From Octopus sinensis (Eukaryota), in NCBI RefSeq assembly GCF_006345805.1, contig NC_043014.1:12338001-12402000 (forward strand): DNA of 64,000 bases, in the 5' to 3' direction. Position numbers and translations under genes: made by a program. Each line of letters begins with the position of its first letter. Position 1 is the first letter of the stretch. The notes under the pieces were generated by a model. It searched no databases, was not told the origin of the DNA, and saw only the letters and a program-made list of their open reading frames with translations. This document shows positions 7,201 to 37,845 of this stretch, in pieces.

Positions 7201-10200
7201 CACCTAACTGGCCCTCGTGCCAGTGGCACATAAAAGCACCCACTACACTCTCAGAATGGTTGGCGTTAGGAAGGGCATCCAGCTGTAGAAACTCTGCCAG
7301 ATCTGATTGGAGCCTGGTGCAGCCATCTGGTTTGCCAGTCCTCAGTCAAATCGTCCAACTCATGCTAGCATGGAAAGCAGACGTTAAACGATGATGATGA
7401 TGATGATATACAAATATATGTGTCATCATCATCATCATCATCATTTAGCGTCCGTTTTCCATGCTAGCATGGGTTGGACGGTTCTACTGGGGTCTGTGAA
7501 GCCAGAAGGCTTCATCAGGCCCAGTCAAATCTGGCAGTGTTTCTACGGCTGGATGCCCTTCCTAACGCCAACCACTCCGTGAGTGTAGTGGGTGCTTTTT
7601 ACGTGCCACCCGCACTGGTGCCAGACAGAGCTGGCAAACGGCCACGAACGGATGGTGCTTTTTATGTGCCACCAGCACGAGGGCCAGGCGAGGCTGGCAA
7701 CGGACACGAAACGGGGCAGTGCTGGCAACGGTCGCGAAACGGAAAGTTCTTTTACATGCCACCGGCACTGGTAACACATCTGCAATTTCCATTGATCGAT
7801 TTCCATTGATCGATTTCGATTCTGATCCTCACTTGCCTCAATGGGTCTTCACAAGCAGAGTTTCGACATGCCACCGGCACTGGTAGCACATCCGCAATTT
7901 CCATTGATCGATTTCGATTCTGATCCTCACTTGCCTCAACACGTCTTCACAAGTAGAGTTTTGTGTCCCAAGAAGGGAAGGTATGCATACGTAGGCTGGC
8001 TCCATCCCATGTAGAAGGCCACGGGTTGTGGACTCACTTGTCCTGCCAGGTCTTCTCGCGCACAGCACACTTCCAGAGGTCTCGGTCTCTAGTCATTTCC
8101 TCAGTGAGACCTAAAGTTCGAAGGTCGTGCTTCACCACCTCGTCCCAGGTTTTCCTGGGTCTGCCTCTTCCACAGGTTCCCTCAACCGCTAGGGTGTGGC
8201 ACTTTTTCACACAACTATCTTCATCCATTCTCACCACATGACCATACCAGCGCAAACGTCTCTCTTGCACACCACAACTGATGCTTCTTAGGTCCAGCTT
8301 TTCTCTCAAGGTACTTACACTCTGCCGAGTGTGAGTACCGGCATTACACATCCATCGGAGCATACTGGCTTCATTTCTAGCGAGCTTACGCATATCCTCA
8401 GCAGTCACGGCCCATGTTTCACTGCCATGTAGCATGCTGTTCGTACACACGCATCATACAGTCTGCCTTTCACTCTATGCGAGAGGCCTTTTGTCACCAG
8501 CAGAGGTATGTGTATTGGTGTAAAAATTTTATAATCAACTGATAGTCTTAAAGGCATTGGTCTTTAATGCTTCCGTGTTAAAACTGGCCATATACACTCC
8601 AAATATTCTACCTGTCATATTCAAACTGGCTGGATCTCACCTCTCACACCTACCTTATAATGACATTCTAAAAATAAAACAATCACATCGTCAAAATATC
8701 AAGGCTACAAAATAATGCATGATTAATTCAAGACAGTGTGAATAAATAAGCATTGAGCTGAAGTAATCTAAATGCTAAAGAATTAAGTATTTTTTTTAAT
8801 TGATTGTACCGGTGGCACGTAAAAAGCACCCACTACACTCATGGAGTGGTTGGCGTTAGGAAGGGCATCCAGCCGTAGAAACATTGCCAGATCAGACTGG
8901 GCCTGGTGCAGCCTTCTGGCTTCACAGACCCCAGTTGAACCGTCCAACCCATGCTAGCATGGAAAGCGGACGCTAAACGATGATGATGATGATGTACTGA
9001 ACTTAGCACTCATTTCAGTTTAGTGTGGAACTAAACTAGATGAAAGTATGGCATTTAAGTATGTGTATGAATGAAGCAAGCAAATTTTTTCAATTGATTA
9101 TTAAGATACAGAACAAGGGCAGAAAAGTTGATGGAGAAGTCAAAATTGAATTATCAAATTTTAAAAAAAAATTTTTAATTGGAAAAATCAAATGTAAATA
9201 CCTGATCTTTTTTTGTCAGTTGAGACTGTAGACATAATGCTTGATGTCGAAGTTCTTCAATTTCTAAGTCTTTGTCCTTAATTTCATTATATTTCTTTGC
9301 AATGTCACTCTTCAGCTCTAACAATGAGCCTTGAAGACTGGAATATTTCTGAAGAATAGTATCCAATTCATTGGACTGACATTCATAGAGTTGACACTTC
9401 TCTTCCAATTCCTTCTTGAGATCCGACTGTATACCAGAATGAGTTATTTCTAATGACTTGAGGTTTTCAGAAAGAGAGTTATATTCTTGGGTCTTAACCA
9501 TAAGCTGCTTTTCCAAATCATTAATTTGATTTTCTTTGTCTTGTTTGAAAGCAGCTAATTCATTGGTCAGCTCAATTTGTTCTTTACGTTTTTGTTCAAG
9601 CTCACATGCAAAGTGCTTCTCAGTTTTCATTTCCCCAGCTTGAAGCTCAGACAATTCTCTGGAATGTGCTAAACATTCTTCTGACTTCTCAGACAATTTC
9701 TCCTTTAGTTTCTTCACCATTTTACTCTCCTCCATCTTTCTTTCTTTAAGTTGAGATAATTCTTGAGAAAGAGCTAAGCACTCTTGTGATTTCTCAGACA
9801 ATTTCTCTTCTAGTTCTTTCACCATTTCACTTTCCTCAATCTTTCTTTCTTTAAGTTCAGACAATTCTCTGGAATGTGCTAAACATTCTTCTGACTTTTC
9901 AGACAACTTCTCTTCTAGTTCCTTTACTGTTACACTCTCCACCATTTTCTCTTCCTTAAGATCAGACAATACTTTCATAAGCGCTAAACATTCTTGTGAT
10001 TTGTCATTGAATTTTTCTTCTAGTTCTTTCACCATTTCACTCTCCTCCATCTTTCTTTCTTTAAGTTGAGATAATTCTTGAGAAAGAGCTAAGCACTCTT
10101 GTGATTTCTCAGACATTTTCTCTTCTAGTTCTTTCACCATTTCACTTTCTTCAATCTTTCTTTCTTTAAGTTCAGACAATTCTCTGGAATGTGCTAAGCA

Positions 10201-13200
10201 CTCTTGTGATTTCTCAGACAATTTCTCTTCTAGTTCTTTCACCATTTCACTTTCTTCAATCTTTCTTTCTTTAAGTTCAGACAATTCTCTGGAATGTGCT
10301 GAACATTCTTGCGATTTTTCAGACAATTTCTCTTCTAGTTCCTTTACTGTTACACTCTCCTCCATTTTCCCTTCCTTAAGTTCAGACAATACTTTGGTCA
10401 GCGCTAAACATTCTTGCGATTTGTCAGACAATTTCTCTTCTAATTTTTTCACCATTTCACTTTCTTCAATCTTTCTTTCTTTAAGTTCAGACAATTCTCT
10501 GGAATGTGCTAAGCACTCTTGTGATTTCTCAGACAATTTCTCTTCTAGTTCTTTCACCATTTCACTTTCTTCAATCTTTCTTTCTTTAAGTTCAGACAAT
10601 TCTCTGGAATGTGCTAAGCACTCTTGTGATTTTTCAGACAATTTCTCTTCTAGTTCCTTTACTGTTACACTCTCCTCCATTTTTCCATCCTTAAGTTCAG
10701 ACAGTACTTTGGTCAGCGTTAAACATTCTTGCGATTTGTCAGACAATTTCTCTTCTAGTTCTTTCACCATTTCACTTTCTTCAATCTTTCTTTCTTTAAG
10801 TTCAGACAATTCTCTGGAATGTGCTAAGCACTCTTGTGATTTTTCAGACAATTTCTCTTCTAGTTCCTTTACTGTTACACTCTCCTCTATTTTCCCATCC
10901 TTAAGTTCAGACAATACTTTGGTCAGCGCTAAACATTCTTGCGATTTGTCAGACAATTTCTCTTCTAGTTCTTTCACCATTTCACTTTCTTCAATCTTTC
11001 TTTCTTTAAGTTCAGACAATTCTCTGGAATGTGTTAAGCACTCTTGTGATTTCTCAGACAATTCTCTTCTAGTTCTTTACTGTTCACTCTTCTTCATCTT
11101 TCCTTTCTTAAGTTCAGACAATACTCTGGAAGTGCTAAGCATCTTGTGATTTTTGCACACTACATTTCACCATTTTCTCTTCTAGTTCTTACTGTTACAC
11201 TCTCCTTATTTTCATCCTTAAGTTCAGACAATACTTTGGTCATGTGCTAAACACTCTTGCGATTTCTCAGACAATTTCTCTTCTAGTTCTTTCACCATTT
11301 CACTTTCTTCAATCTTTCTTTCTTTAAGTTCAGACAATTCTCTGGAATGTGCTGAACATTCTGCGATTTTTCAGACAATTTCTCTTCTAGTTCCTTTACT
11401 GTTACACTCTCCTCCATTTTCCCATCCTTAAGTTCAGACAATACTTTGGTCAGCGCTAAACATTCTTGCGATTTGTCAGACAATTTCTCTTCTAGTTCTT
11501 TCACCATTTCACTTTCTTCAATCTTTCTTTCTTTAAGTTCAGACAATTCCCTGGAATGTGCTAAACATTCTTCTGACTTTTCAGACAACTTCTCTTCTAG
11601 TTCCTTTACTGTTACACTCTCCACCATTTTCTCTTCCTTAAGTTCAGACAATACTTTCATAAGCGCTAAACATTCTTGTGATTTGTCATTGAATTTTTCT
11701 TCTAGTTCTTTCACTATTTTACTCTCCTCCATCTTTCTTTCTTTAAGTTGAGATAATTCTTGAGAAAGAGCTAAGCACTCTTGTGATTTCTCTTCTAGTT
11801 CTTTCACCATTTCACTTTCCTCCATCTTTCTTTCTTTAAGTTGAGATAATTCTTGAGAAAGAGCTAAGCACTCTTGTGATTTCTCTTCTAGTTCTTTCAC
11901 CATTTCACTTCCTCCATCTTTCTTTCTTTAAGTTGAGATAATTCTTGAGAAAGAGCTAAGCACTCTTGTGATTTCTCTTCTAGTTCTTTCACCATTTCAC
12001 TTTCCTCAATCTTTCTTTCTTTAAGTTCAGACAATTCTTGAGAAAGAGCAGAGCATTCTTCTGACTTTTCAGACAATTTCTTTTCTAGCTCTTTCACTAT
12101 TTCACTCAACTCTCTTTTTCCATCCTTAAGTTCAGACAATTCTTTGGAAAGAACTGAACATTCTTCTGACTTGTCCGACAATTTCACTTCTGGTTCCTTT
12201 ACTGTTACACTCTCCTCCATTTTCCCTTCCTTAAGTTCAGACAATACTTTGGTAAGCGCTAAACATTCTTGTGATTTCTCAGACAATTTCTCTTCTAGTT
12301 CTTTCACCATTTCACTTTCCTCAATCTTTCTTTCTTTAAGTTCAGACAATTCCCTGGAATGTGCTGAACATTCTTGCGATTTTTCAGACAATTTCACTTC
12401 TAGTTCCTTTACTGTTACACTCTCCTCCATTTTTCCATCCTTAAGTTCAGACAATTCTTTGAAAAGAGCTGAACATTCTTCTGACTTTTCAGACAATTTC
12501 TCTTCTAGTTCCTTCACTGTTATACTCTCCTCCATATTTTTTTGTTTAAGCTCCGACAATACTTTGCTAAGCGCTAAACATTCTTGTGATTTCTCAGACA
12601 ATTCCTCTTCCAGTTCTTTTACTGTCTTGTTCAGCTCTATATTTCTACCTTCAAGCTCAGAGAATTCTCTGGAATGCACTAAACATTCTTGTGATTTAGC
12701 AGATAACTTTTCTTCAATTTCTTTTAATCTTCATCCATCTCACTTTCTTTAATTTCAGGAAGCTCTGTTACTCTTTCATTATCATCCATCTTTCTTTCTT
12801 TCAGTAAAGACAATTCTTTGGAGAGAAATAAGCACTCTTGTGATTTGGCAGAAAGGTTCTCTTCAAGTTCCTTTATCATTTCACTATCCTGTGCCCTAAG
12901 ATCAAGTTCTGCAGCTAAATTATGGCATTCATCAACCTTGGATTGCAGTTCTTTTTGACAAACATTCAATTTACTGTCAAGACTGATAAAACCAGCATTC
13001 TCAGCAGTAAGTCTCTCTAATGAGTCTTTCAAATTAGAATTATCTCTCTTCAGTTCATTAATGTAAGTCAGTTTTGATTTTAATTCTTTTCTGAGTTCTA
13101 TAATGTCATCTTCATTGATGTCAAAAGAATTTGGTTGTATATTATCAATATATCCTGAATGAGATAAATTTAGCTCTAGTCCATCACAAATTTCTTGTTT

Positions 13201-16004
13201 GGCAGATTGAAGATTTACATCAGCAGAAAACAGCTGTTCTTCTTGCTCTGCATCTAATATATTAAAATCTCTTATTTCTTTCTCCAAAGCGGCAAAATTT
13301 TGGATCTTAGATTCCGACGATTCAAATAGTAATTTATGTTTCTCTTTCAGATCATTCAACTCTTTCGTTTTATGAGAAAGTTCACTTTTCAACAAGATAA
13401 TATCTGCCTTCTCTTTACTCTCACCCTCTGATCTTCCAATTTCTTCAACAAGTACATCATATTCTAGAGCTTTGGATTCTAATCTTTGTAAAGAACATTG
13501 CAAGGCTTCTATTTCCTTATCTTTTTGTGTTTTATAATCAGAGAATTTTGACTTCATTTCGCTTAATTGTTCAACCAAATCTTCACATTGTTGTCTTTTA
13601 GCCTCTAATTCTGCTTTGTTTGAAAGCAACTCTCCTTTCAGGTAGTCATATTCTTGTTTGTCAAGTGTACAGTCTCTTGCCAATGAATTTAACTGATGCA
13701 AATTATTCTGTATCTGTAGATTCTCATCTTCAACAAGCTCTCCACTTCCATGTTTGAGCCTTTCTAGCTCAGAATCAGATTCATTGGAATTCTGTTGACT
13801 AACAATAATAGGGTTGGACCTCACTTCACTTACACTTTCAAAGGATTCTAATTTAATTTTGAGTGATGAACATTCTTTAGTTTTAATTTCAACTTCTTTT
13901 TTCAGAGAATTAATTTCATCCTTCAAAGAATGACATTCTTGAATTTTCTTATCTAGACTTGTTTGGCATTCAAGAAGCTGACTTTTGGATGCTAAGTCAG
14001 AAATATCACTTGAGTCATAATCTTCAAGAGACGTAATTAGGACATCAGAATCATCCTTATCATTATCTTTCAAGTTAACTTGATGAACAATTGAAACGGA
14101 TTTCCATTGACTCCTATCAGCAGAGTTTAAGCTCATAGATTTTCTGATGCTGGTATCTAACTGTTCGATTTGTGAAAGATCTACATCTTTTTGAGCTAGT
14201 AAGTGTTCTCTGGTTTCTTTCAAAGATTTTTTCATTTCTAAAACAACAAGATGAGCAATCTCCACATTTTCTTGCAATTTTGTACATTCTTCACCTTTTA
14301 TTGCAAGTTCAAGTGCAATTTTCTCCTTTTCTCTAATTGTTGCTGCTAATTGTTCTTGAAGTTCAGAAAGAACATCATTGTTATCTTCTGGTGTTTTACT
14401 TTCTTCAGAAGTACTTAATTCAGGAATTTTATCATCTAATTGCACTTGCTGATCCACTGATGCTCTTGATAAATATGTTAGTTCTTCTGCTTTGAGTTTT
14501 AGTTTGTAGTTCAATTTTTCATTATCTTGCATAACTTTATTAAGTTGTGTCTTCAAGTCGATGTATTCTTTATGCTCAAAAACAGGCGTTTTGTCCTGAA
14601 CAAGTTGATTAAGTTTGTCATTTTCTGCAATCAATTTATTAAGTTCTAGTTTTTGTTCATTATTTTCCGATGATAAGAAAGTTATTTCTTCAGATTTAGA
14701 TAAGATTTGCTCTTTTGCCAATTGAAGATCATGAGACAGTTTCTGAACCTGGCTTTCCAAAATTTGGACTTGGGACTCCAAATTAAATATTTGATCATTA
14801 AGCAGGTTATAGTCTGCTATACGTGCAGATCGTGAAGCTGAACGACTAGTGATGTTGCTTAGATTCAGTAACGGCCTATCTCCAGAATTACTACAACAGC
14901 TAGTATCTAACAAACTAGATCTTTGTGCATGCTGAAGCTCTTCTTCAAGGCTCTTCACACGTTCTTGACTATTTTGCAGTTTAGACAGCAAGTACATATT
15001 TTCAATTTCTGTACTTTGCACTTTTTGCATCAGATCTGTTTTTGAGTCAATGAAAGCTTTCACTTCTCTGTCATGATTCGTTTTTTCTTCTTTCAGCCTT
15101 TGTCTCTCCTTTTCAATCTTTTCCTCTTCCACCTGTAAGAACAAAGAAATACTTCTGTAGTGATGCTATTTTGGAAGTTTTCAGCACGCATGCACAGAGT
15201 TGGATTACTTCCGGTAGGCCGCCGGAAGTTCCCTCATGCGCAGAGAACTGCGAACAGAAAGTTTTCCCGCTAGATCAGTCTTTTTGAAGCTGCAGCCCTA
15301 TCAAGTGGACACAACTAAACCTTCTCTCAAGGAAAACCTAACACGTAGAAAAGCCCCCTTCTACGAGGGAACGAAGACAGCATTTTGGCTCACACAAGTT
15401 AACTGTTGTGAATAGTTTTATGGACTTGGCTACCGGTTCGCCCCGAAGAAAATATATGTGCATATATTTTATTTGCGAATCCAGACAAAAATAAAGTATT
15501 ATTTATTGCTGTTGAAGATAGTCGAAGCTTTGGTTTTCCTTTCAACACAATTGAATGTAACAGGATTAGACCGACACTCCTCAAGTGTTCCTGAGACCTT
15601 CATCCTGTTACACTTTCAATAGGATTCGTGTCACAGATAATTTTCCTATAATTACATTGTATTCTGCGATGAAAGGTTTGACTATTTCTGTACATTCACT
15701 CACACTTCATAACATAATTAGCAAAGAAAATAATCTTAATTCTCAACAGCCCCATTCATCTAATAATAAACAGGCATCATGTAAGCAATTGGGGGAAGTG
15801 GAAGTGTGTGGGAAAATATATACTTTCTTACTCTTTTACTTGTTTCAGTCATTTTGATTGATTGTGGCCATGCTGCAGTGCTGCCTGGACTTATTCTTTG
15901 TAAGCCTGGTACTTATTCTATTGGTCTCCTTTGCTGAACTGCTAAGTTACGGGGATGTAAACACACCAAGATGGTAGTAATGTGATGGTGGAAGGACAAA
16001 CACA

Positions 16005-16042
<38 letters not shown>

Positions 16043-19000
16043 AATAAATAACAGGCTTCTTTCAGTTTCCGTCTAGCAAATCCACCCACAATGCAGGGGA
16101 AGATGTAGATGAAGAGTTACAAGTGGTTCAAGGAGTTCAGAGGGCGACAAATGGAGCAGATGAATATGAAGGAGTAAGGGAAACTGAGCTTGCATAATTT
16201 CTGAAACCCTAGTGGAAGATGAGAGGAGTCTGAACAAATGCAGACACAACCTTTCAGAATAGAGTTTGAGCAAAGAATGTAGCCTCAATGGTGCAGATGG
16301 ATTATGGATACAGGCTGAGAAATCTGTGGCTTGGAGAGGAATAGGACATAGAGTTTGTGTGAGCGTGAGGTGATGTGTGGTATTTAGGTTGCAACAAAGT
16401 CCATGGACATCAAAGAAGTAGGAAAATTGTTCACAAGATTCAGTGTTGGTTTCTGACATCTTGGGGAAAATGCCAAGGATGAAAGTTTCTCAAAAAATCA
16501 TGAGAATGCTCAGCCAAAAGAATGCTTGCGACAGAGTGGATTCTGACAAAGGTGCCCATGGGTCAAAGTGGTAGTGCTAAAAAGAGTGATATAATGGAAT
16601 CTATTGTTCAGAAAAGGAAGAGAAAAAAAGGGAGAGAAAGAGATCCTGTTGGCAATTAGTGGCTGATGCTAACTGAAAGTGATCTACAGAATCTGTTTAT
16701 AGATTCAGTTGAAGAAGTTCAAAAGAGAAAAAAACATTTTGATATTTCGTTGCACCTCTCAAATCCACGCAGAAAAGATATTTCATCTTTAACCCTTTAG
16801 TATTTAAACCGGCCATATCCGGCCAAAATATTCTATGTATTTTATGTTCAAACTAGTCAGATATGGTCATTCATAGCTACCTTATTGTGTCATTTTAAAA
16901 ATAAACAATCACATCATTGAAATCTCGAAGCCATGAAATGATGCAAGATTAATTTTACATGGTGTGAATACATAAGCTTTACATTTGACAGAATAATCTG
17001 AATGCTAAAGGGTTAACAATTAGGTTTATAATATTCAAAATTGCCATCTTATAAGCCTAGTTAAGTTGGTGTACAGCACCAAGATGTGGTGCAGAGCTTT
17101 CTAATAGGAATATCTAAAATAGGCATAGGCATGGATATGTGGTAAGAAGCCCGTTTCCCAGCCACATGGTTCTGGGTTCAATCCCAGTGTGTGGCCCCTT
17201 GGGCAAGTGTCTTCTGCTATAGTCTCGAGTTGACTAAAGCCTTGTGAGTAGATTTGGGAAATGGAAACTGAAAGAAGCCTGTTGTATATATGTGTGTGTG
17301 TGTGTGTGTGTTTGTCCCCCCCCCCCCATCACTGCTTGACAACCAGTGTTGGTGTGTTTAAAACAGACTGATAGAATAAGTACAGTAATTAAAAATAAGT
17401 CCTGGGGTCGATTTTTTTGGTTAAAACTCTCCAAGGGTGTGCTCCAGCATGGTCACAGTCAAATGGCTGAAACAAGTAAAAGAATTAAAGAATAAGAATA
17501 AAATAGAGACGAATAAGTGGAGGCAAGTGGCTTAGTGGTTAGGGTGTTGAACTCATGGTCATAAGATTTTGGTTTCAATTCTGGGACCAGGCGGTGTGTT
17601 GTGTTCTTGAGCAAAACACATCACTTCATGTTACTCCAGTCCACTCAGCTGGCAAAAGCATGTCATCTTGTAAAGGACTAGTGCCGCATCCAGGAAGGAA
17701 TATACACATCACAGTAACTGGGAAACTAGCCTTATGAATCTATATGACTCAGGAAGGAACTTTAAACCCCACAACCCAACCCTTTTTTTTCTCTTCTCTG
17801 TCTCTCGCTGGGTAACCAGGTAGCTCCTCTATAGCAAGACACCTGTATCTATCTCTCAGTCACACTAACCTTTTATCCTCTGACACAAGTCCCCTCTTTA
17901 AATGCCCCTACCCTCCCCAAAATTCCTTGTCTTGCAAGTTACTTGGTGACCCTGCCAGTGCTGGTGCCATGTTAGAAGCATCCAGTCCACTCTGTAAAGT
18001 GATTAGCATTTAGAAGGGCATCCAGTCGTAAAAACTCTGTCAAAACAGACACAGTATCCTGAGGTAGTCTTCTACCTGGCTGGCCCCTGTCAACCGTCCT
18101 ACTTATACATGTGTAAGAGTTAGCACTTCCTTCTCTAAGCCTAGATTCGAAATCAAATCCAAGAATCATCGGTCGTCAAAAACCAATGCATGTATAGGCG
18201 CGAAATTTAAAGATCCTTTGTTCTGTCAAAAACTGATTGATCATCTCCCTTTGACCTGCGACCTCAGCCATGTCAGGCGAAGTTCAACTGTACAAGCGCT
18301 GACCTACTTAAGTGGTGGCTCTGTTGCAGTATGTCTATCTTTCTAGCTGTTTGAAATATTATAAATACAAGGGAAAAACAGAGAAAGAAACACAATCGGA
18401 GCTGACACACCAGCAGACACCCCACGTTTTGGAGACGACAGAGAAAATGCCTACAGGCTACTGTTTCGAATGATTCACGCACACACCCACACACACAAAC
18501 ATATTCATCTTTATTATGTGCTCTATGCAAGCAATGTGTAGCATTTGCTTACAATTGTATGTAGTGTATTTATAATCCATGTAAATAAATCCCTTTTTAA
18601 TCATGAAACAATTTATGTATTTATTAATACACACACACATCCACTACATTTGGTGACCCCGTCAAACAAATTGCGCCTTCCCCGGAACCAGCTTCATCAA
18701 CCACGTTGAAGAATTACAGCTTGCACATCACCCGGCAATGAAACACCTGAGAATTCCGACGAACACAATGGACCTCCCGGAACAGAATCCAGCGGCCAAC
18801 ATCATACCTCAGATCGACATGGCATTCCAAGCGGCAATTTCTTTGAAAATTCCACCATTCTGGACCCACGACCCTGCATTATGGTTTTACCATATAGAGG
18901 CACAGTTTTCCTCTCACAGAATACTGAGCAATGCGTCTCGACTTTCGCATGTTATCGGTTCTCTGTCGCCAGAAATAACAAACGTTGTCCGTGATCTTAT

Positions 19001-22000
19001 CATGGCACCACCCGGTTCTGTGTCGTACGACACTTTTAAAACCACGCTGATAAACAGAACCTCCGAATCGCAACAGAAACGACTTCACCAGCTTCTGATA
19101 TCGGAAGAATTGGGTGACAAAACGCCGTCCCAGCTTCTTTGTAGAATGAAGCAGCTTCTCGGAGATGAGAGCCTCCCAGAAAAAATTTTCAAGCAGCTTT
19201 TTCTCCAGCGTCTGCCCTCCAATACCCAGGTTGTTCTCGCTTCTACTAGAGAAAATACATCCATTGAAGAACTGGCGGATCTAGCTGACAAAATAGCCGA
19301 AGTACCGCACAAATATCCAACGGTATCGACGGTGACGCCAGCCGTTCCCAGTACCAATCCTTTCCGTGCACAAACCAGTTCTTCCGATTTTTCGGACTTG
19401 CGTGCATTAATGACACAGCAAGCTGCTCAAATACAGATCCTCACAACCCAAATACAGGCCCTAAAGCTTAGTCCCCAGCGTCGAAGCACCAGCCAATCGC
19501 GACGAGAGGCAGACGGTCCCGAAGCCCCAGTGCTACCCGCAATTCACATGACACGTGTTGGTACCACCGGACATTCGGAACACGGGCACAAAAATGTACG
19601 GTACCGTGCTCGTTTTCCTCACCCAGTTCGGGAAACGGCACAGCCAGGAATTGAACGCGACGGAAGTTCCTGGTTTGCACCCACACAGTCGCCTGTTTTT
19701 CGTTTGCGATCGGGTAACAGGCACGCTTTTCCTGGTTGACACCGTGCGGAAGTCAGCATCATCCCTGTCTCCAACACTTCTGGAAAAAGAAAAGAGACAT
19801 CAGTCTGTCTTCAGGCAGTCAACCATTCACCCATTCCAACCTACGGTGAACAGTCCCTAACATTGAACTTAGGACTACGCCGCACATTTCAGTGGGTATT
19901 TGGCGTCGCTAAACTGCCGACCCCTATCTTAGGAGCCGATTTCCTGCATCATTTCGGTCTCCTGGTAGACATAAAGAACAGACAACTTGTTGACAGCACC
20001 ACCAGGCTTACTGTGCGTGGTATAGCCGCTCGTATGGCCACAGTATTGCTTACAACAACGACTCGTCACAGTTCCATCCTGAAGGAATATCCGGACGTCG
20101 CTCGACCAGTATTCCACAACCAGCCGATCAAACACGACGTTACCCACCACATCAAAACCAGCGGTCCACCTGTTGCTGCAAGGCCCAGAAGGTTACCATC
20201 TGATCGTCTCCAGGCCGTCAAGCGGGAATTCCAGCACATGCTTGACCTCGGAATCATCCGCCCTTCCAGCAGCAACTGGTCCTCGCCGATACACTGCGTC
20301 CCAAAAAAATCATCGACCGATTGGCGGGTTTGCGGCGATTATCGATCGCTGAATAAAAGCACTATCAGTGATGCCTATCCGGTGCTTTTCTTCAAGACTT
20401 TTCGAGCTCGCTGCATGGAGCTCAAATCTTTTCCAAAATCGACCTTTGTGCGAGCATACAACCAAATCCCAGTGGAACCTGTGGACATCTCGAAGACAGC
20501 AGTTACTACGCCTTTCGGAATGTTTGAATTCCTGCGTATGCCTTTCGGTTTACGCAATGCAGCACAGACATTCCAAAGGTTTATCGACATAGTGACTAGA
20601 GGTTTGCCTTCGTCTATACCTACATAGACGACATACTCGTGGCCAGTAACTCGGACGAAGAACGTAACCAACACCATCACCTACTATTCAAACGCCTCCG
20701 TCAATTTGGTGTTGTTATCAACCCTACTAAATGTTTGTTCGGAGTTGCTTCCCTTCATTTTCTTGGGCACATCATCGATAAGAATGGAATTTGTCCCCTT
20801 CCCGAGAAAGTCATGGCCATCGTGGATTTTCCACCACCCACATCTCTCCGCAAATTAAGGGAATATCTCGGTCTAGCGAATTTCTATCGATGGTTCATAC
20901 CCCACCTCGCTGAGATAGCGCAACCGCTCATGGATTTGCTACATCAGCGAACTTGCAAAATTGCAGATATAGCTCTGACCGAAGATCAACTCGCTTCTTT
21001 TGCTGCCCTGAAAAAAGCGTTATCTAACGCTACCATGTTGGTTTATCCAAAACCAGACGCCCCACGATGTTTACTCGTTGATGCATCCGATTCCGGAGTT
21101 AGAGGTGTACTACAGCAGCTTGTTGACGGTATATGGCAACCGTTGTCTTTCTTTTCTAAGCGGTTAAAACCCGCGGAAACCAAATACAGCACATTCAGTC
21201 GGAAATTATTAGCGGCATACCTAGCCGTTAAGCATTTCCGTCACATGCTAGAAGGTACCAATTTTGCCATATACACCGACCACAAGCCATTAGTATATGC
21301 ATTTAACACCAAGCCGGATCGCCACTCGCTGAGAGAAATCCGCCACCTCGACTTCATATCGCAGTACACAACGGATATACGCCACATCAAAGGGACGACC
21401 AACTTAGCAGCCGATGCACTTTCACACGCGCAGATCAATGCTATCCACACCACGTCTACAATTGATCTGGCACGTATAGCAGCTGACCAGGAGAATGACG
21501 AAAAACTTCTAAAGCTCCAGAATTCGTCATCTCTGAAATTTCAGCATGTTCCGCTACCATCATCCACAGCCCATATTTGGTGTGATATCTCCACTGGTTA
21601 CCAACGCCCTTATGTACCACAGAAACATCATCGAGAAGTTTTCTCCACTCTGCATTCTCTGTCACATCCTGGTATTCGCTCCACTCAAAAGCTGATATCG
21701 ACCCGTTTTGTGTGGACCAGTATCAACAAGGATATCAGAGAATGGACCAAGTGCTGTGTTGCGTGCCAAAAAGCGAAAATCCACCGGCACATAAAATCAT
21801 CAATCGGTTCATTTTCGCAAACCGACGCACGATTTCAGCACGTTCACATTGATATCGTCGGACCCCTGCCACCTTCGCAGAACTATTCGTATTTGCTTAC
21901 CTGCGTAGATCATTTTTCGCGATGGCCCGAAGCCTGGCCCTTATCTGATATATCAGCAGAAACGGTCGCCAAAACGCTGATATCACAATGGGTTTCGCGT

Positions 22001-25000
22001 TTTGGCACACCCACAACAATCACCACCGACAGAGGACGTCAGTTCGATTCCCACCTTTTCACCGAGCTGACTCGTCTCCTCGGGTGTAAACACACCCGCA
22101 CTACGGCTTACCACCCTGCAGCAAATGGCATGGTCGAATGCTTTCACCGCCAACTCAAGGCATCTATCAAAGCAGCTCTAGACAGTTCTCACTGGTTGGA
22201 ACATCTCCCTCTCATCCTCCTTGGAATTCGATCCACGGTTAAGGAAGAACTGGGATATACTCCGGCTGAACTCGTTTATGGCACAGCACTCACCTTACCT
22301 GGGCAGATGATCGAACCTGTTTCACAAGGCTTTCCTGACCCACAACAATATGTGCACCGATTACGGACATCCATGTCGCAGTTATCACCTTCAGGCCCCA
22401 GACAACAGAACGTCGTTTCACGAGTCCCAAAAGATATCAACACTTGGACTCATGTTTTCGTGAGGAATGATGGGATACCATCTCAACTTCGCCCACCATA
22501 TTCCGGGCCCTACAAGGTTATCAAAAGAGAACCCAAGTATTTCGTCCTCCATATTGGAGGCAAACGAAATACAGTCTCGATTGATCGTTTAAAAAAAGCT
22601 TTCATCGAGGAGGACTTACATTCAGTTCCCTCCTTTCCTCGAACAGACTCAACAACTCCAGCAAACACCACAGATTCTGCACAACCCCGACACACCAAAT
22701 CGGGAAGAACAGTTCGATGGCCAGCAAGGTTTATGCAAGTTTTTCGGGTAGGTTCCGAACTTTTAACTTGTCCATCTTCCTAAATGAAATGCATACATCA
22801 ACACATAACTCACATAACTGCATCACCCACATACAAACCCAGAGAAATCAAAGAACATTTATGTGCATAAAAAAAAAAAAAAAACGAAAACAAAAACGTT
22901 GTTCCACATCAACGAAAAACTGTCTGTATGAACATTTACGGAACATTTCACAATCGAACTTTGCCGATGAACATTTCTTTCATTTTTGCATGTTTTGCAT
23001 GTTTTGCTTTCTTGTAAATATATTTTTGCTAACTGCATATTCACACACATTTACAAGTCATATTCTCATGTGTGCTATCACTCGATCTTTTTCGCCACTG
23101 AAAGACACCTTGCCTCTATTAGACCTCTAGTGGGTCAAGTAATCAATAGACGCACATCTCTTTCAACGTGCCAACATATTTCTGCCTGGGCACAAATACA
23201 TATTGCCCACCATATAGCACACACAAACAGTAAACCTTTGCTTCATAATTTTATTGTTCATTTGTCTGTTACGATGTGTAAATTTTTTCTGCATACACAC
23301 AAAAAATAACATTTCCAATATCGTTCGATCTCTGTGGCTTTCTCACTTTCTTCTCTAAGCCTAGATTCAAAATCGAATCCAAGAATTATCGGTCGTCAAA
23401 TACCAATGCATGTATAGGCGCGAAATTTAAAGATCCTTTGTTCTGTCAAAAAGTGATTGATCATCTCCTTTGACCTGCGACCTCAGCCATGTCAAGCCAA
23501 GTTCAACTGGACAAGCGCTGACCTACTCAAGTGGTGGCTCTGTTGCAGTATGTCTATCTTTCTAGCTGTTTGAAATATAAATACAAGGGAAAAACAGAGA
23601 AAGAAACACAATCGGAACTGACACACCAGCAGACACCCCGCGTTTTGGAGACGACAGAGAAAATGCCTACAGGCTACTGTTTAGAATGATTCACGCACAC
23701 ACCCACACACACAAACATATTCATCTTTATTATGTGCTCTGTACAAGCAATGCGTAGCATTTGCTTACAATTGTATGTAGTGTATTTATAATCCATGTAA
23801 ATAAATCCCTTTTTAATCATGAAACAACTTATGCATTTATTAATACACACACATATCCACTACACATGCATGGAAGACAAATGTTAAATGATAACGATAA
23901 ATATGGCCGTTGCCACGTAAAAAGCACCATCCAATTGTGGCCGTTTACCAGCCTCGTCTGGCACCTGTGCAGGTGGCACATAAAAAGCACCCACTACACT
24001 CATGGAGTGGTTGGCGTTAGGAAGGGAATCCAGCTGTAGAAACACTGCCAGATCAGACTGGGCCTGGCACAGCCTTCTGGCTTCCCAGACCCAGTTGAAC
24101 CGTCCAACCCATGCTAGCATGGAAAACGGACGTTAAACGATAATGATGATGATAAATAATAACCTATGGATATACATACACTCAATTTGATTCCATCGTT
24201 GACACACTGTAACTCCAACTCAAGGAATTCCTTGGTTTCATCGTGATCAGGGACAGAGAGGCGAGGTTTTTTAGTTGGGCTGTAAAGAAAGTTTATAAAA
24301 CCAATTTTCAATGCAGTTTCACTACCACATACATCAAATACACCATTCTTCTAAAGAAGATGATAATATCTGCTTCATAATTTTCATAGTTCATGCATGC
24401 AAAGGAGAAGCAAGTACTGGCAATCCCACTGTATGGCACCTGGGACAAGTGTCTTCTGCTGTAGTCCTGGGACAACCACACACATACACACACACACACA
24501 CAATGGGGTTCTTTTTGTTTCCGTCAATCAAATCCACTCACTGGTGGAGCGCTAAGAGCACCATCCAAGCGTGATCGTTGCCAGAGCAGCTGACTGGCTT
24601 CCATGCTGGTGGCACGTAAAAACCACCATTCGAGCGTGATCATTACCAGCATCACCTTACTGGCACTTGTGCTGGTGGCACGTGAAAAATAACATTCGAG
24701 CGAGGTTGTTGCCAGTGCCGCTGGACTGGATCCTGTTCAGGTGGCACGAAAAGCACAATTTGAGCATGGCCGTTGCCAGTACCGCCTGACTGGCCCTCAT
24801 GCTGGTGGCACGTAAAAGCAGCCACTACACTCTCGGAGTGGTTGGCGTTAGGAAGGGCATCCAGCTGTAGAAACTCTCCTAGATCAAGATTGGAGCTTGG
24901 TGCAGCCATCTGGCTCACCGGTCCTCAGTCAAATCATCCAACCCATGCCAGCATGGAAAGCGAACGTTAAACGATTATGATGATGAGCTGGCAGAAACGT

Positions 25001-28000
25001 TAGCACACCGGGCGAAATGCTTAGCGGTATTTCGTCTGCCGTTACGTTCTGAGTTCAAATTTCGCCGAGGTCAACTTTGCCTTTCATCCTTTCGGGGTCG
25101 ATAAATGAAGTACCAGTTACACACTGGGGTCGATGTAATCGACTTAATCTGTTTGTCTGTCCTTGTTTTTCCCCCTCTGTGTTTAGCCCCTTGTGGGTAG
25201 TAAAGAAACAGATTATGATGATGATGATGATGAAGGCTTTGGTCAGCCTGAGGCTTCAGAAGAAGACACTTGCCCAAAGTGCTACACGATGGGATTGAAC
25301 CTGAAACCATGTAGCTGGGAAGCAAGCTTCTTACTACACAGCCATGCCTGCACCTAGATGTTGGATATCAATTAAAACAAAGAGTCAATACATACACACA
25401 AGAGCCTGTACACACCCACTCACACACACATTAAAAATATAGTCGAGAAAAGGTTAAAATAGATTTGGAAGTCTTACCTGGGCATATGAGACTCATTTTC
25501 TTTCATTGTTAACATATTCTTTAACATTTCATTTTCAAACCTCAGGAAATGTTCATTTTCATTCTGGAAAAAATCAAAAACAATGCATTTCACAATACTG
25601 AGACAGGAATAAACAATTTGACCGTTTTGTGACCAACCTGCCTGAAAACACTCCTGGTTCTATGATGAAAGTTTCTTCATTTGAAACGATCTTAATTAAA
25701 AGCTCCCATCAAAATTTCGTGCTAATTTATGCTGCAGGCATCAGATTGATAATCAGAAAATTATTTTACTAATTTACTCTTTTACTTGTTTTCAGTCATT
25801 TGACTGTGGCCATGCTGGAGCACCGCCTTTTTAGTCGAGCAAATTGACCCCAGGAGTTATTCTTTGTAAGCCTAGTACTTATTCTATCGGTTTCTTTTGC
25901 CGAACTGCTAAGTTACGGGGGACGTAAACACATCAGCATCGGTTGTCAAGCAATGTTGGGGAGGGACAAACACACACATATATACGACAGGTTTCTTTCC
26001 GTTTCCGTCTACCAAATCCACTCACAAGGTTTTGGTCGGCCCGAGGTGCCATGCAGTGGGACTGAACCATGTGGTTGGTAAACAAGTTACTTACCACACA
26101 GCCACTCCTACACCTAAATTCTTCATTATTTCCAAAATTAATTGAAACAAAGGCAGAATATTTTAACAGAAATATGGTAACAAAAGGGATTAAGTGACCT
26201 GAATTAAAACCTTCCATCAAAATTTCATGTTACTGTAAAAACCCATGTAATTTGCGCACTTGTGTAATTTACACAGGTGATTTTCAGGATAAAATTTCTT
26301 AAAAAAAGCTTCTACTCATGTAAAATTCGCACCCAAAAGTTTTCAGAATTGCTGATATGGCCAGAGGGAAAAGGTTTTCACTTTAGATGTATTTAGCATA
26401 ATTTCACTTATTTATGATTAGATTTTGTTAAATTCTCATAAAACAAAATTTCTGTTTAACAGGTCTCACATTGAAAGCTATTGAACTACAAAGTGTTTGT
26501 GTTGTTTATAATAAACTTTATTTTACATTTCTTTCCCACAAGAGATTATGTCCGATCTTTAGCATACTGCTGTATGTCTTCTCAAATCACGATCACAGGA
26601 AAAGTTATTGATAAGAATTATCAACAAAAACAAAGCTGATAAATATGCACAGGTGTTGCAAATTAAGCTTAATTACCAATAAACATTAATGGTTTTAGTA
26701 AATTTATACAGAAAATGTAAGCATTATACCATCCAGCATAAATAAAGTCAACTTCATCATATTTAACCCTTTAGCATTTAAACCGGCCATATCCGGCCAA
26801 AAATATTCTACCTGTTTTATGTTCAAACTAGCCCTATCTGGTCTTTCACACCAACCCTACAATATCATCTTAAAAATTAACAGCTACCTTATCAAAATCT
26901 CATAGCTACAAGATAATGCTTGGTTAGTTCAAAACAATGTGGATAAAAAGCATTAGTTTTGGCAGAATAATGCAAACACTAAAGGGTTAAGCCCTTATTT
27001 TTTCTGTAAAACCTATTCTGACATTAAATGAGTCAACTTCCAGTATGAATGCTTGTCTTGTATGTCTTTCTTCAACAGATAAAATATTTCTAAAAAAATT
27101 CTGGAAATCATCTACTTATGTAATTTACACACTTTGAAAGTTTATTTTTATTTTTGGGGAAAAAAATGCGTAAATTACATGGGCTCTTACAGTAATTTAT
27201 GTTCCAAACACCAGATTAATAACGAGAAAGTTATTTTACTTTCTTCATTATTTCCAAAATTAATTGAAACCGGTGGCACGTTAAAAGCACCAACCGATCG
27301 TGGCCGATGCCAGACCCCCCTGGCCCCTGTGCAGGTGGCACGTAAAAAGCACCCACTACACTCGCGGAGTGGTTGGTGTTAGGAAGGGCATCCAGCTGTA
27401 GAAACACTGCCAGATCAGACTGGAGCCTGGTGCAGCCCTGGCTTCCCAGACCCCGGTCGAACCGTCCAACCCGTGCTAGCGCAGAAAACGGACGTTAAAC
27501 GATGATGATGAAAGGCAGTGTAATTCAAAAGAAATATGGCAGCAAAAAGTTAAACAAGAGCATCAAGGTAAGGAGAGAGAGAATAAAAAGCACCTGGTGC
27601 CACAAAAAGGCACCTAGTACACTCTGTAAGATGGTTGGCATTAAGAAGGACATCCAGCTGTAGAAACTGAGCCAAAAGAGATAATAGAACTTGGTGCAGC
27701 CCTCTGGCTTGCCAACTCCTATCAAACCATTCAACTCATGCCAGCATGGAAAATAGACATTAAATGATGATGAACTCTATTTGGGAAATAGTTGAAAGAA
27801 ACTAAGATGAACAATTTTTTTTTTTAGAGAAACAAAACTAAACAATAAAAGAAATAAAGATGCCACAGTCAAGGGCCAACAAGGATTCATCCTGAATCAT
27901 ATTATTATTATTGTTTTTAAATTCCTTATGCATTAAAGAGGATATGTTTTCTTCCAAATAAATTTCATTTTTTTGTTTAAGCTCCGACAATACTTTGCTA

Positions 28001-31000
28001 AGCGCTAAACATTCTTGTGATTTCTCAAACAATTCCTCTTCCAGTTCTTTTACTGTCTTGTTCAGCTCTATATTTCTTCCTTCAAGCTCAGAGAATTCTC
28101 TGGAATGCACTAAACATTCTTGTGATTTAGCAGATAACTTTTCTTCAATTTCTTTTAATCTTTCATGAAAAAAACAAATAGAGTCTCTGTGTGTCACTCA
28201 ACCTGCAAGAAACAGCAGCCAGATCTCCCTGATCATCTTAATGAAAGGAAATGACATATTAACATAGCTTTATATATCCCCCTATAAAAGATGGGACGAC
28301 CACAATAGGAACGCCTGTTCATCATATAACTGCTTGATCTGGATTGACTTGGGGTTAAAAATAATAACAATTTGAAGAAAGAATAAAAGCCAAGAAAAAA
28401 AACGTTCACTATTATCTTTCATCATTTACTACAGTACTTGGACTGAGGTCATATTGGGACACTGCCTTGAGGGGTTTCAGTAGGACAAATTGACCCCAGG
28501 ACTTCTGTTTTTATTTTTAAGTTTGCTACATGCTCTGTTGGCCCGTTTTGCCAAACTGTGAAGTTAGAAAGGTGCCAACTTTTTTGGACTGCAGCCCCCT
28601 TGACACCCAGGCCACATTCCTAGTGACCCCACCCCAGCTAACTATCACAAACATAGACCTCTTTCTGAAGCAAATTCAAAGCAACTGTATTTCACAAATA
28701 AACTTAACCTAACGAACCCGTAATTTTGTTGTTTGCACATGAATCACTACCCCATTATCGCCCTGCTTTCCTTCAATGCCCCCTTGGAATTTTCCACTGT
28801 CCCCAGGGGAGTAATAGCACCCACTTTGGGAACCACTGATGTAAACCAACCAATGCCAATTGTCAAGGGTGACAAAAAGTCAAAAAAACATTGTGTTTGT
28901 GTGTGTGTGTGTGTGTGTGTATTTAACCCTTTAGTGTTCAGATTACTGTTAAATGTAATATTTTTTCACTCAAATTGTTTTTAATTAATCCTGCATTATT
29001 TTATAGCTTTTGAGGTTTCAATGATATGAATATTTATTTTTAGAATGTCAATGTAGGTTAGGTGTGAGAAGCTACATATCACCAGTTTGAATATAAAGCA
29101 TAGAATATTTGGGCCGGATATGGCCGGTTTAAACACTAAAGGGTTAAGTGTGTCTGCTATTTTCAAGATTCTCGTTTGATGGTCTTACTTGTGCCAAGTA
29201 CTGACATGTCAAAGAATACAAACAAAAATACAAGATAAAAACAAGAAAAACAAAAACAAAAAATGGCTAAAAGAAGAGAAGGAATGCAAAAAACATAACA
29301 ACAAAGTAGAAAACTAAAAGATCAAACCTACTTTACATTCTGTTTGGACAGAACAGCTGACATAGTTAACTAGAGGTTTGCCATTGGAAATACGCTTCAA
29401 GTTATTACTGGTATCAGTAGTTTTGCTCTCATCATCAGACAGTGAGGTTTCGGCAATGCTGTCAAGAAATCTCGCAGGAGTTCTACAAGCATCTGTGAAG
29501 GAAAAGGAACAGAGATTAGATTTAAGAGCTTTGTCTAGACTGGTGCTCTGCAACTGGTATGCCGCGAGACAGTACTAGTTGTGCCACAGTGTAACCCGAT
29601 TATAATTTCTACCCTTATACTTTTAGTTATATTTTTAGTTCAGGTGGAGGCGCAATGGCCCAGTGGTTAGGGCAGCGGACTCGCGGTCATAGGATCGCGG
29701 TTTCGATTCCCAGACCGGGCGTTGTGAGTGTTTATTGAGCGAAAACACCTAAAGCTCCATGAGGCTCCGGCAGGGGATGGTGGTGATCCCTGCTGTACTC
29801 TTTCACCACAACTTTCTCTCACTCTTACTTTCTGTTTCTGTTGTACCTGTATTTCAAAGGACCGGCCTTGTCACTCTCTGTGTCACGCTGAATATGCCCG
29901 AGAACTACGTTAAGGGTACACGTGTCTGTGGAGTGCTCAGCCACTTACACGTTAATTTCACGAGCAGACTGTTCCGTTGATTCGGATCAACCGGAACCCT
30001 CGTCGTCGTAACCGACGGAGTGCTTCCCAGTTCAGATGTGCCGCTCAAGTTTGAAAAGAATAAAAGTATACCACAGGTGAAAAAAAGGTTGTGGAACACA
30101 GGTCTAGACATCAAAAGGTTATGTTTTACTTCCAGTGGAGTTGCCTGAATGAAACATAGCCAAGTTCCAGAGTAGGAGGGACAGCAACTATGGCTCTTTG
30201 CAGTGCTTTTGATACAATTGCAATGGGATGGGTAGGAAACGACATTGATTCGTAGTCTGCTGCAATAAGATTCAGTTTCATTAAGATATCCTATCTGTCG
30301 GGTCTGAATACATGACACAGGGTAGATTCCATAAAAAAGCATCCAAAGACTTGGAGATGGTTGTGTTAATCCTTTAGCATCCAGATTACTCTGTCAAATG
30401 TAATACTTACTTCAGTCACAATGTTTTGAATTAATTATGCATCATCTAATATACTCTCTCTTTTACTCTTTTACTTGTGTCAGTCATTTGACTGCGGCCA
30501 TGCTGGAGCACCGCCTTTTAGTCGAGCAAATCGATCCCAGGACTTATTCTTTGTAAGCCTAGTACTTATTCTATCGGTCTCTTTTGCCAAACCGCTAAGT
30601 AACAGGGACGTAAACACACCAGCATCGGTTGTCAAGCGATGTTGGGGGTACAAACACAGACACACAAATATATACACACATACATATATACGACAGGCTT
30701 CTTCCAGTTTCCGTCTACCAAATCCACTCACAAGGCTTTGGTCGGCCCGTGCCTATAGCAGAAGACACTTGCCCAAGATGCCACGCAGTGGAATTGAACC
30801 CGGAACCATGTGGTTAGTTAGCAAGCTACTTACCACACAGCCACTCCTGCGCCTATTACTGCTTTTACTTATATAACAATTAATTACTATAAGATTGTAT
30901 CAATTTTTCTTTGTGTTTTCCAAGTTTTAGATGTAACATCCGCTTCAGCTTTACACAACCATTACATTTTAAAATGTAGGGAAAAAATTTAAAACCTGTT

Positions 31001-32600: not shown

Positions 32601-32632
<32 letters not shown>

Positions 32633-32941
32633 GTGTGTGAGTGTGCGTATATATATATATATATATAATAACAAAGGGTAAAATTAATTAATTAAGAAGT
32701 AATCAATAATTTTCCCCAAGTAGAATTCGGCATGAAAAAAGGACCATTTCATGGTAAACTTAAGTAATACTTAATAAATAGGGTTCAGCAAAGATTTGCT
32801 TTACCACATACCGAAGTTTAGAAATAGCAGCCAAAAACGTTAGCTATTTCTTCTACTTTAAAAAGGGACTCCCAGAAAAACCAAAAGTATGTGGTAAAGC
32901 AAATCTTTGCTGAACACCTATTTATTAAGTGTGTATATATA

Positions 32942-32988
<47 letters not shown>

Positions 32989-33686: not shown

Positions 33687-33720
<34 letters not shown>

Positions 33721-37806: not shown

Positions 37807-37845
<39 letters not shown>

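Follow-up and report, generated by a model that had tools for sequence, protein, structure and literature searches.

Does the long tandem repeat at this octopus locus encode part of a motor-protein stalk, and what do its size and sequence say about how such a stalk evolves? The question is raised by the window, a 64,000-nucleotide stretch of Octopus sinensis contig NC_043014.1 (positions 12,338,001 to 12,402,000; coordinates below are counted from its first nucleotide), for which a sequence-only reading had proposed a CENP-E stalk built by expansion of a 35-residue unit inside one ~5.9-kb exon. Our analyses make it probable that the repeat is a genuine coding minisatellite in the single giant stalk exon of octopus CENP-E, acting as a spacer and subject to concerted evolution, and that the breaks in its reading frame are assembly errors.

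The assignment to CENP-E was borne out. The top PDB matches of the motor are human CENP-E entries (1T5C, 292 bits; 6M4I, 291 bits), followed by kinesin-2 at 241 bits, and the nearest named proteins in protein searches are called 'centromere-associated protein E'. All proteins that the motor search listed were below ~700 residues in length; full-length orthologues were taken from a representative search and a cluster look-up. Exons for the P-loop, switch I and switch II of a kinesin-7 motor were all located by motif scan, and the Pfam Kinesin family matches the Argonauta CENP-E orthologue. Judged by these matches, the gene is the octopus kinesin-7/CENP-E orthologue, laid out as follows:

58120-24177, minus strand: upstream exons (motor, neck and linker), from the motif scan and from tblastn with cuttlefish and O. 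sinensis proteins
58120, minus strand: start codon
near 52205, minus strand: P-loop, by motif scan
near 45953, minus strand: switch I, by motif scan
near 40787, minus strand: switch II, by motif scan
24281-24177, minus strand: last of the neck and linker exons
9202-15132, minus strand: giant stalk exon, 5931 bp, 1977 codons, from splice sites and O. vulgaris gene models
5458-5363, 3954-3823 and 1682-1620, minus strand: first three tail exons, located by a tblastn query from the C-terminal region of O. vulgaris model P0002

The remainder of the gene lies beyond the window and in O. vulgaris continues for ~26 kb further. The motor and tail exons are intact by tblastn. The whole protein comes to ~2930 residues and has a CAAX-like C-terminal end, CKSQ in the O. 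vulgaris model and CTNQ in Argonauta, most of the tail falling outside the window. No Pfam family matched the tail.

The stalk exon is bounded by canonical splice sites, with an acceptor (ttacag, followed by GTG) at 15133/15132 and a donor (gtattt, preceded by CAG) at 9202/9201. Its ends, as originally proposed, agree with the O. vulgaris models P0123 (junction between GIKLS and VEEEK) and P0002 (junction between TKKDQ and LHVTP). The stalk of more than 1500 residues that characterizes CENP-E after the neck is provided by these 1977 codons, which show heptad periodicity, six of the array units being predicted all-helical. The exon divides into three parts:

12847-15132, minus strand: non-repeated first part, ~762 aa, within the open frame 12727-15165
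9583-12846, minus strand: tandem array of 31 units, from Tandem Repeats Finder and unit-start anchoring
9202-9582, minus strand: non-repeated last part, ~127 aa

The first part is 49% identical to cuttlefish CENPE over 223 aa and contains five scattered copies of a K-S/T-x-E-C..L motif, against 0.07 in shuffles. The last part shows 100% identity with its O. vulgaris counterpart across 361 bp. The non-repeat stalk matched no Pfam family; in protein word-index searches it returned a single match, as did the array, and in the representative search the sequence similarity of the stalk was detectable only within cephalopods.

Tandem Repeats Finder reported a 105-bp period at 9639-12724 (29.7 copies, 79% matches, score 3123). 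Anchoring on unit starts resolved 31 minus-strand units arranged head to tail between 12846 and 9583, spanning 3264 bp or ~1088 codons, in close agreement with the ~31 copies and ~1080 aa first estimated. The basic unit of 105 bp encodes 35 aa, or five heptads. The earlier description of the units as exactly five heptads applies to about 27 of the 31, which measure ~105 bp; three others are of 93 bp and one is of 150 bp, the last being the length of the intact O. vulgaris copy. The exceptional units are:

12698-12846, minus strand: first, divergent unit, 149 bp here and 150 bp, in frame, in O. vulgaris
11790-12067, minus strand: three short units (93, 92 and 93 bp; 31 aa) that lack the KLSE end of the unit

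Four short 93-bp units are present in O. vulgaris, compared with three here. The near-identity of copies noted in the sequence-only reading is evident within three subtypes, A, B and C, whose members share 92-99% DNA identity, many units reaching 97-99%; the block of units 11-13 matches that of units 27-29 at 97-99%. All unit lengths (105, 93 and 150 bp) are multiples of three and 26 of the 31 units share one open relative frame, as in a coding minisatellite. The array accounts for roughly 1050-1090 residues, more than half of the exon and ~37% of the protein. By arithmetic, a 35-residue unit corresponds to 5.2 nm of coiled coil and the array to ~160 nm if fully coiled. No Pfam family and no PDB sequence relative was found for the array.

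The array units evolve as coding sequence. Among the 23 intact units pN/pS is 0.28 and diversity at codon positions 1, 2 and 3 is 0.10, 0.13 and 0.30; the remaining two sense frames contain stops in every unit. One reverse frame is free of stops in 20 of the 23 units, and plus-strand open reading frames inside the array (10394-11149, for example) were rejected as genes, being the antisense of the repeat. The array is predicted to form an α-helical coiled coil. AlphaFold2 modeled six units entirely as helix (pLDDT 95.5); the monomer folds as a hairpin, which is uninformative on the dimer. In the best heptad register, position a is hydrophobic in 80% of cases and position d in only 50%. The pattern is imperfect, lysine and glutamate occupying core positions in mid-unit, and the 31-residue units interrupt the register.

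The view of the array as part of one coding exon stands as regards its coding nature and its place in a single giant exon; the frame itself is broken in five units of the window. Here the exon is split among three frames into four open segments (12727-15165, 11900-12730, 11295-11927 and 9178-11076), with a garbled stretch lacking any open frame at 11077-11294. The five units carry three single-A deletions in A-runs and two indel mosaics, located as follows:

12698-12846, minus strand: first unit, one-base A-run deletion, frame shift near 12730
11883-11974, minus strand: unit 9, one-base A-run deletion (92 rather than 93 bp), frame shift
11053-11369, minus strand: units 15-17 (104, 113 and 100 bp); one-base deletion in unit 15, many small indels making mosaics of units 16 and 17

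Units matching unit 9 are intact in O. vulgaris. Indeed, all five broken units are intact in the O. vulgaris assembly, and the window in turn has intact copies of the four units that are broken there. In an older O. sinensis assembly the array is interrupted by a 100-N gap. Since the breaks are private to each assembly, take the form of A-run deletions and indel mosaics and coincide with a region where the older assembly has an N-gap, the frameshifts of the window are most likely consensus errors and not real mutations. On the opposite reading, genuine frameshifts would mark an exon, or a gene copy, in decay towards a pseudogene; this would account for the stop codon and the five broken units found in the window and for the four broken units in O. 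vulgaris. That reading is highly improbable, and we reject it because every break is assembly-private and resembles a consensus error; the units are moreover under purifying selection, the motor and tail exons are intact, and no second gene copy was seen among the loci examined. An uninterrupted frame of 1342 codons crosses the array in Argonauta. From these comparisons we infer an intact reading frame, and use of the whole exon, in the animal. A cuttlefish Logan protein, P0125, was considered as transcript evidence and rejected, as its end runs into intron sequence, which indicates a genomic or unspliced origin.

How far the size of the array can be trusted, and whether it is functionally meaningful, was considered next to each other. 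The window has 31 units, O. vulgaris has 29, and the older O. sinensis assembly has 24 or more ahead of its gap, each count being one sequence from a different assembly, possibly of a different species, with errors or a gap in the array. As all three assemblies are imperfect there, the exact number of 31 is not secure, and true polymorphism and misassembly are inseparable here. Over-assembly or collapse could even have made the size of the array largely an artefact, the true array being clearly shorter or longer; units 16 and 17 are garbled mosaics, the three assemblies give three different interiors, and one of them is broken by its N-gap within the array. We consider this quite unlikely. The array is spanned in two independent assemblies, whose edges (units 1-8 and the last four) are identical, and in the third 24 units or more precede the gap; the intact Argonauta frame contains ~30 homologous units. 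The approximate size of the array is therefore robust, the exact count not.

The sequence-only reading had gone further and suggested a coding VNTR, possibly polymorphic, that may tune the kinetochore-microtubule tether in steps of ~5 nm; on this view copy number would be under selection for the reach of the tether. The 5.2-nm unit would suit such a role, very close genomes differ in the number and order of units (31 versus 29; three versus four 93-bp units), and shortening of the CENP-E stalk impairs congression and attachment in human cells (PMC4116301). These differences, however, come from a single sequence per assembly and fall exactly where the assemblies are least reliable, copy number is tied to no phenotype, and the stalk exon is of very different length in different genera (Octopus, 1977 codons; Argonauta, 1331; cuttlefish, ~1735), a spread that fits loose constraint better than fine tuning. 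Selection for tether length by copy number is unlikely. A further possibility arises from the cysteine of the fuller module, K-S/T-x-E-C..L..L, which coleoid cephalopods have retained at a core position of the coiled coil 20-30 times per protein, and which may mark a repeated structural or binding element. The module could then serve for multivalent docking or as a redox-sensitive staple, with a functional, polymorphic unit number that sets tether reach and valency; we hold this to be a long shot. The preferred reading remains that of a coding spacer whose copy number can drift, and the comparison with other molluscs bears on its age.

A giant stalk exon is not peculiar to octopus. Giant open frames are also found in cuttlefish (5.2 kb), Argonauta (4.0 kb) and Lottia (4.3 kb), so the limpet probably shares the exon; the scallop contig in this comparison stops before the stalk. 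Argonauta has ~30 homologous units of mixed length (35, 28 and 31 aa) with sequences of their own and only short near-identical runs, and an HMM of the Octopus unit finds them with values down to 7e-10. The cuttlefish exon contains 20 degenerate copies of the K-S/T-x-E-C motif against 0.19 expected, the last five exactly 32 residues apart, and a DNA-level array is absent from it. For Octopus and Argonauta, nearest-unit identity within the lineage amounts to 0.91 and 0.81, respectively, falling to 0.47 and 0.40 between the two; the array is shared and its units are more alike within than between lineages. That the Argonauta units are homologous yet species-specific in sequence points to concerted evolution. 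Between the window and O. vulgaris, the edge units are 100% identical and the interior is rearranged. Of the recent or homogenised expansion first proposed, the recent homogenisation of the interior is upheld, whereas the array itself is not fresh: by these sequence comparisons it is old in octopods, given the ~30 Argonauta units and the 20 motif copies of cuttlefish.

A probable course of events is that an old K-S/T-x-E-C..L..L module, recurring through coleoid cephalopod stalks, was the ancestor of the array units and came to form a tandem array in octopods. Unequal exchange and gene conversion would keep the array homogeneous within each lineage. Because the unit is a whole number of heptads, the coiled-coil register survives the gain or loss of units, and copy number can drift. 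The array may then serve to space the motor from the kinetochore-binding tail, a role carried over by analogy from work on vertebrate CENP-E (PMC4116301).

For kinetochore biology, Octopus, Argonauta and cuttlefish offer a natural series of CENP-E stalks in countable 5-nm units, which could probe the importance of stalk length and regularity, addressed so far only by engineered deletions in human cells (PMC4116301). For annotation, a 3.3-kb coding array leaves an essential gene with fragmented or truncated models in three public octopus assemblies. Public O. vulgaris models split CENP-E into four genes, the RefSeq O. sinensis model XP_036366862.1 is flagged LOW QUALITY and stops within the array, and the older assembly has its scaffold gap, so that CENP-E is wrong in these proteomes. 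What the octopus locus encodes is a known protein in an unusual form, one that public gene models already contain, though broken. The sequence-only reading had allowed that the array might already be annotated across molluscs; this is so in part for octopods, in these broken or LOW QUALITY models, and not across molluscs. Our literature search returned no relevant paper linking CENP-E with octopus. For repeat evolution, the locus provides a tidy example of concerted evolution in an intracellular coiled-coil protein.

The closest known system is vertebrate CENP-E (kinesin-7, KIF10). The human protein has ~2700 residues and is farnesylated, and the vertebrate stalk is a discontinuous coiled coil, not known to be repetitive, encoded over many small exons. 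Octopus CENP-E resembles it in size, in an N-terminal motor of the same subfamily, in a very long coiled-coil stalk before the tail and in the CAAX-like end of the O. vulgaris model (CKSQ). It differs in having a homogenised 35-residue array that makes up more than half of the stalk exon and its whole central stalk in one 5.9-kb exon. At one fish CENP-E locus, which ends after the neck, the mapped pieces of motor and neck encode 22-40 residues each; no paper giving '49 exons' for CENPE was found in the literature search. In human cells CENP-E's stalk length matters for function (PMC4116301). Among cephalopods, Argonauta hians GAB1607646.1, Acanthosepion pharaonis CENPE, O. vulgaris CAI9737426.1 and O. 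sinensis XP_036366862.1 represent the same gene with the giant exon and the K-S/T-x-E-C module. They differ in that the Argonauta units have their own sequences, cuttlefish is without a DNA-level array, and the Octopus models are split four ways or truncated in the array.

Phage tape-measure proteins and the needle-length proteins of injectisomes are molecular rulers. They offer an analogy for the tether-tuning hypothesis only, in the notion that a distance may be fixed by how long a protein is; unlike them, the octopus stalk has no measured structure tied to its length here. Streptococcal M proteins contain heptad-based tandem repeats whose number is changed by intragenic recombination. The heptad-repeat tails of chicken BG genes likewise vary in number by intragenic recombination (PMC4046983). 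M proteins and BG tails are surface or immune-related and under diversifying pressure, whereas octopus CENP-E is an intracellular mitotic motor and nothing in its array suggests diversifying selection (pN/pS 0.28). All three are nevertheless built of whole-heptad units, change rod length without loss of register and are homogenised within lineages.

The array lies in the stalk of a gene whose identification as a CENP-E (kinesin-7) orthologue, made from sequence, holds. Human CENP-E is the top solved-structure match of the assembled motor (1T5C, 292 bits; 6M4I, 291 bits; next family, 241 bits), and the motor's nearest named relatives are 'centromere-associated protein E' of molluscs, arthropods and vertebrates, which bears out the gene named in the sequence-only reading. 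A search with the non-repeat stalk returned 'CENPE [Acanthosepion pharaonis]', and 'centromere-associated protein E-like' entries of O. vulgaris and O. sinensis share a 90% cluster with the O. vulgaris protein. The C-terminal ends, CKSQ in the O. vulgaris tail model and CTNQ in the Argonauta protein, resemble the farnesylation box of vertebrate CENP-E. The gene is laid out as follows:

58120, minus strand: CENP-E start codon, upstream of the giant exon
near 52205, minus strand: kinesin P-loop, upstream of the giant exon
near 45953, minus strand: kinesin switch I, upstream of the giant exon
near 40787, minus strand: kinesin switch II, upstream of the giant exon
down to 24281-24177, minus strand: further upstream exons
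9202-15132, minus strand: giant stalk exon with canonical splice sites, 5931 bp or 1977 codons

The exon boundaries proposed from sequence were confirmed by canonical sites at both ends, ttgttcttacag/GTGGAAGAG at the acceptor (15132) and AAAGATCAG/gtattt at the donor (9202), the slash marking the junction. O. vulgaris gene models share them (..GIKLS/VEEEK.. in P0123 and ..TKKDQ/LHVTP.. in P0002). Tandem Repeats Finder reported a 105-bp period at 9639-12724 (29.7 copies, 79% matches, score 3123). Units were delimited by anchoring on the unit start AAATCACAAGAGTG, which codes for KSQEC, giving 31 head-to-tail units from 12846 to 9583 on the minus strand (3264 bp, ~1088 codons), numbered from the 12846 end:

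27 units, minus strand: ~105 bp (35 residues)
three neighbouring short units, minus strand: 93, 92 and 93 bp (31 residues)
unit 1, minus strand: 149 bp, divergent

The units sort into three subtypes (A, B and C), inside each of which DNA identity is 92-99%; the block of units 11-13 is repeated as units 27-29 at 97-99% identity. The earlier estimate of ~31 near-identical copies and ~1080 residues is thus matched closely. Divergence is greatest in units 1-7 and the last unit, as expected of an array homogenised in its interior. Plus-strand ORFs of 101-251 codons run antisense to the array (10394-11149, 11446-11751 and 12144-12752); they were rejected as genes and are a by-product of the repeat, since one reverse frame has no stops in 20 of 23 units.

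In the window, open reading across the exon is split over three frames into four stretches (12727-15165, 11900-12730, 11295-11927 and 9178-11076), with no open frame at 11077-11294. The frame is broken by five array units: units 1, 9 and 15 each miss one A from an A-run, and units 16 (113 bp) and 17 (100 bp) are patchworks of many small indels. The array was compared with those of an O. vulgaris assembly (L001, OX597833.1), an O. sinensis assembly (L004, CM016876.1) and Argonauta hians. The O. vulgaris locus has flanks 99-100% identical to the window and an array of 29 units, in which all five broken units are intact, the first, for example, being in frame. Four other units are broken there (119, 107, 106 and 107 bp) and intact in the window, and because of these breaks one CENP-E gene at 1-44823 is annotated as four, of 1726, 141, 164 and 717 residues. 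NCBI labels the 717-residue piece 'Hypothetical predicted protein', and UniRef labels it 'Early endosome antigen 1-like'. In Argonauta an unbroken frame of 1342 codons crosses the array.

Frame breaks of this kind could mark a pseudogene, a reading opposed by their being private to one assembly and of homopolymer or consensus type. The sequence is also under purifying selection: across the 23 intact window units, diversity at codon positions 1, 2 and 3 is 0.10, 0.13 and 0.30, pN/pS is 0.28, and every unit is interrupted by stops in both remaining sense frames. The breaks are therefore most likely errors of assembly. The array, copy number and exon ends seen in the first reading stand; the continuous frame does not in this assembly, most likely through such error.

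The O. sinensis assembly L004 has a 100-N scaffold gap within the array (54489-54588), after ~24 units, and the sequence past it is unrelated to the remainder of the gene. RefSeq XP_036366862.1, derived from it and flagged LOW QUALITY PROTEIN, ends inside the array at 1858 residues; it is hence truncated, and the gene tail would have to be elsewhere in that assembly. The window agrees with O. sinensis at all four residues that separate the two Octopus protein models, yet its DNA is only 97-99.4% identical to L004, indicating a third assembly of the species complex.

Between the window and O. vulgaris, identity is 99-100% for units 1-8 and for the last four, with no difference at all in units 2-8. 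In its interior the window has three additional 105-bp units, one fewer 93-bp unit and a changed A/B order, with many units still pairing at 100% identity. Shared edges around a differing interior would fit a real, evolving minisatellite and also a region where assemblers fail. The stalk exon has 1977 codons in Octopus, 1331 in Argonauta and ~1735 in cuttlefish; this difference of hundreds of codons between genera argues for a stalk length that is loosely rather than finely constrained.

Unit composition is strongly enriched in E, K, L and S. With the heptad register that fits best, unit residues 5, 12, 19, 26 and 33 (C, L, K, V, L) occupy position a; hydrophobic residues make up 80% of position a and 50% of position d. 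The register is kept between units by 35-residue units and lost with 31- and 50-residue ones. AlphaFold2 predicted a continuous helix for six units (pLDDT 95.5), the monomer model doubling back as a hairpin. The computed length is 5.2 nm per unit and ~160 nm for the whole array (0.1485 nm per residue). Neither Pfam nor the PDB sequences gave a match to the array.

The ages of the exon, motif and array were drawn from relatives. At the cuttlefish locus (L002), a 5.2-kb open frame (32590-37794, 1735 codons) is the counterpart of the giant exon. Most of it is spliced out in the CENPE model published for the cuttlefish (906 residues; 3839-41692), and the contig stops shortly past the gene, so that this model is badly truncated. 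The locus has no DNA-level tandem array. In its exon the motif [KRT][ST..]x[EQKD][CY]xxL occurs 20 times (0.19 times in shuffled sequence), the final five occurrences lying at exact 32-residue spacing just ahead of the exon end. In the full-length Argonauta protein P0124 (2449 residues), the octopus-unit HMM matches ~30 units, which are 35, 28 or 31 residues long (values down to 7e-10), and the Argonauta DNA also has 105-bp runs (e.g. 26409-26820, 3.9 copies, 92%). Nearest-unit identity is 0.91 and 0.81 within Octopus and Argonauta, and 0.47 and 0.40 between them; units so much more alike within than between species are, on this comparison of sequences, the product of concerted evolution. In the limpet Lottia (L005), the kinesin-7 motor is followed on its own strand, 4 kb further downstream, by an open coiled-coil frame of 4.27 kb (17672-21943), a position from which we infer that the frame belongs to that gene; its only coding repeat is small (45 bp x 5, SGMSLEDELKQTPTG-like, 18715-18941). 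Searched against 1.84 billion representatives, the stalk sequence found relatives in cephalopods only. The giant exon is probably older than the cephalopod-gastropod split, the motif at least coleoid and the tandem array at least octopod, leaving only the strong interior homogenisation specific to Octopus. The array itself was correctly recognised at first sight; the novelty of the exon was overstated, given the cuttlefish and Lottia frames, as was the recency of the repeat, given the ~30 homologous Argonauta units, and the length-tuning role proposed for the array is a hypothesis.

Argonauta has a second, unrelated repeat of three ~95-residue copies (ETQGGTSQSADVSSLQSQLREKEERCSRLSEKLETLEKDVAEKLDRLKKLNHKSNTQSERIEIL..; L003 ~29700-38600, P0124 residues ~1890-2180). 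These sit in separate exons, which suggests that a group of exons in the stalk near the tail was duplicated in tandem. The repeat was not seen in Octopus. Around the giant exon, the upstream intron contains a (TA)16 microsatellite (16009-16040). In the intron after it, ~1.08 kb (7422-8506) is missing from the O. vulgaris assembly, which has ~10 bp between the flanks. The segment contains a minus-strand ORF of 138 codons (8034-8450) whose motif, of the RLRWYGHV type, resembles the C-terminal part of LINE ORF2, although no Pfam family matched, and the segment is probably a transposable-element insertion polymorphism. A SINE-like dispersed element of ~185-290 bp at 8811-8994 recurs 23 more times in the window, with 70-97% identity (e.g. 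41170-40989, 44289-44108, 7610-7427 and 23966-24153) and many copies in the O. vulgaris locus introns.

The array would form the middle part of a flexible coiled-coil tether from the motor to the kinetochore-binding tail. Copies may be gained, lost and homogenised through unequal exchange and gene conversion among units, and whole-unit changes would be tolerated because the frame and, with 35-residue units, the heptad phase are kept. The array is already within public protein models in broken form, and no paper describing it in octopus CENP-E was found in the literature. Work on human CENP-E, which does not show small length steps to matter, found that removal of 1475 of the ~1700 stalk residues impaired congression and stable attachment as well as the free motor's binding to microtubules (PMC4116301), indicating that a long stalk is needed.
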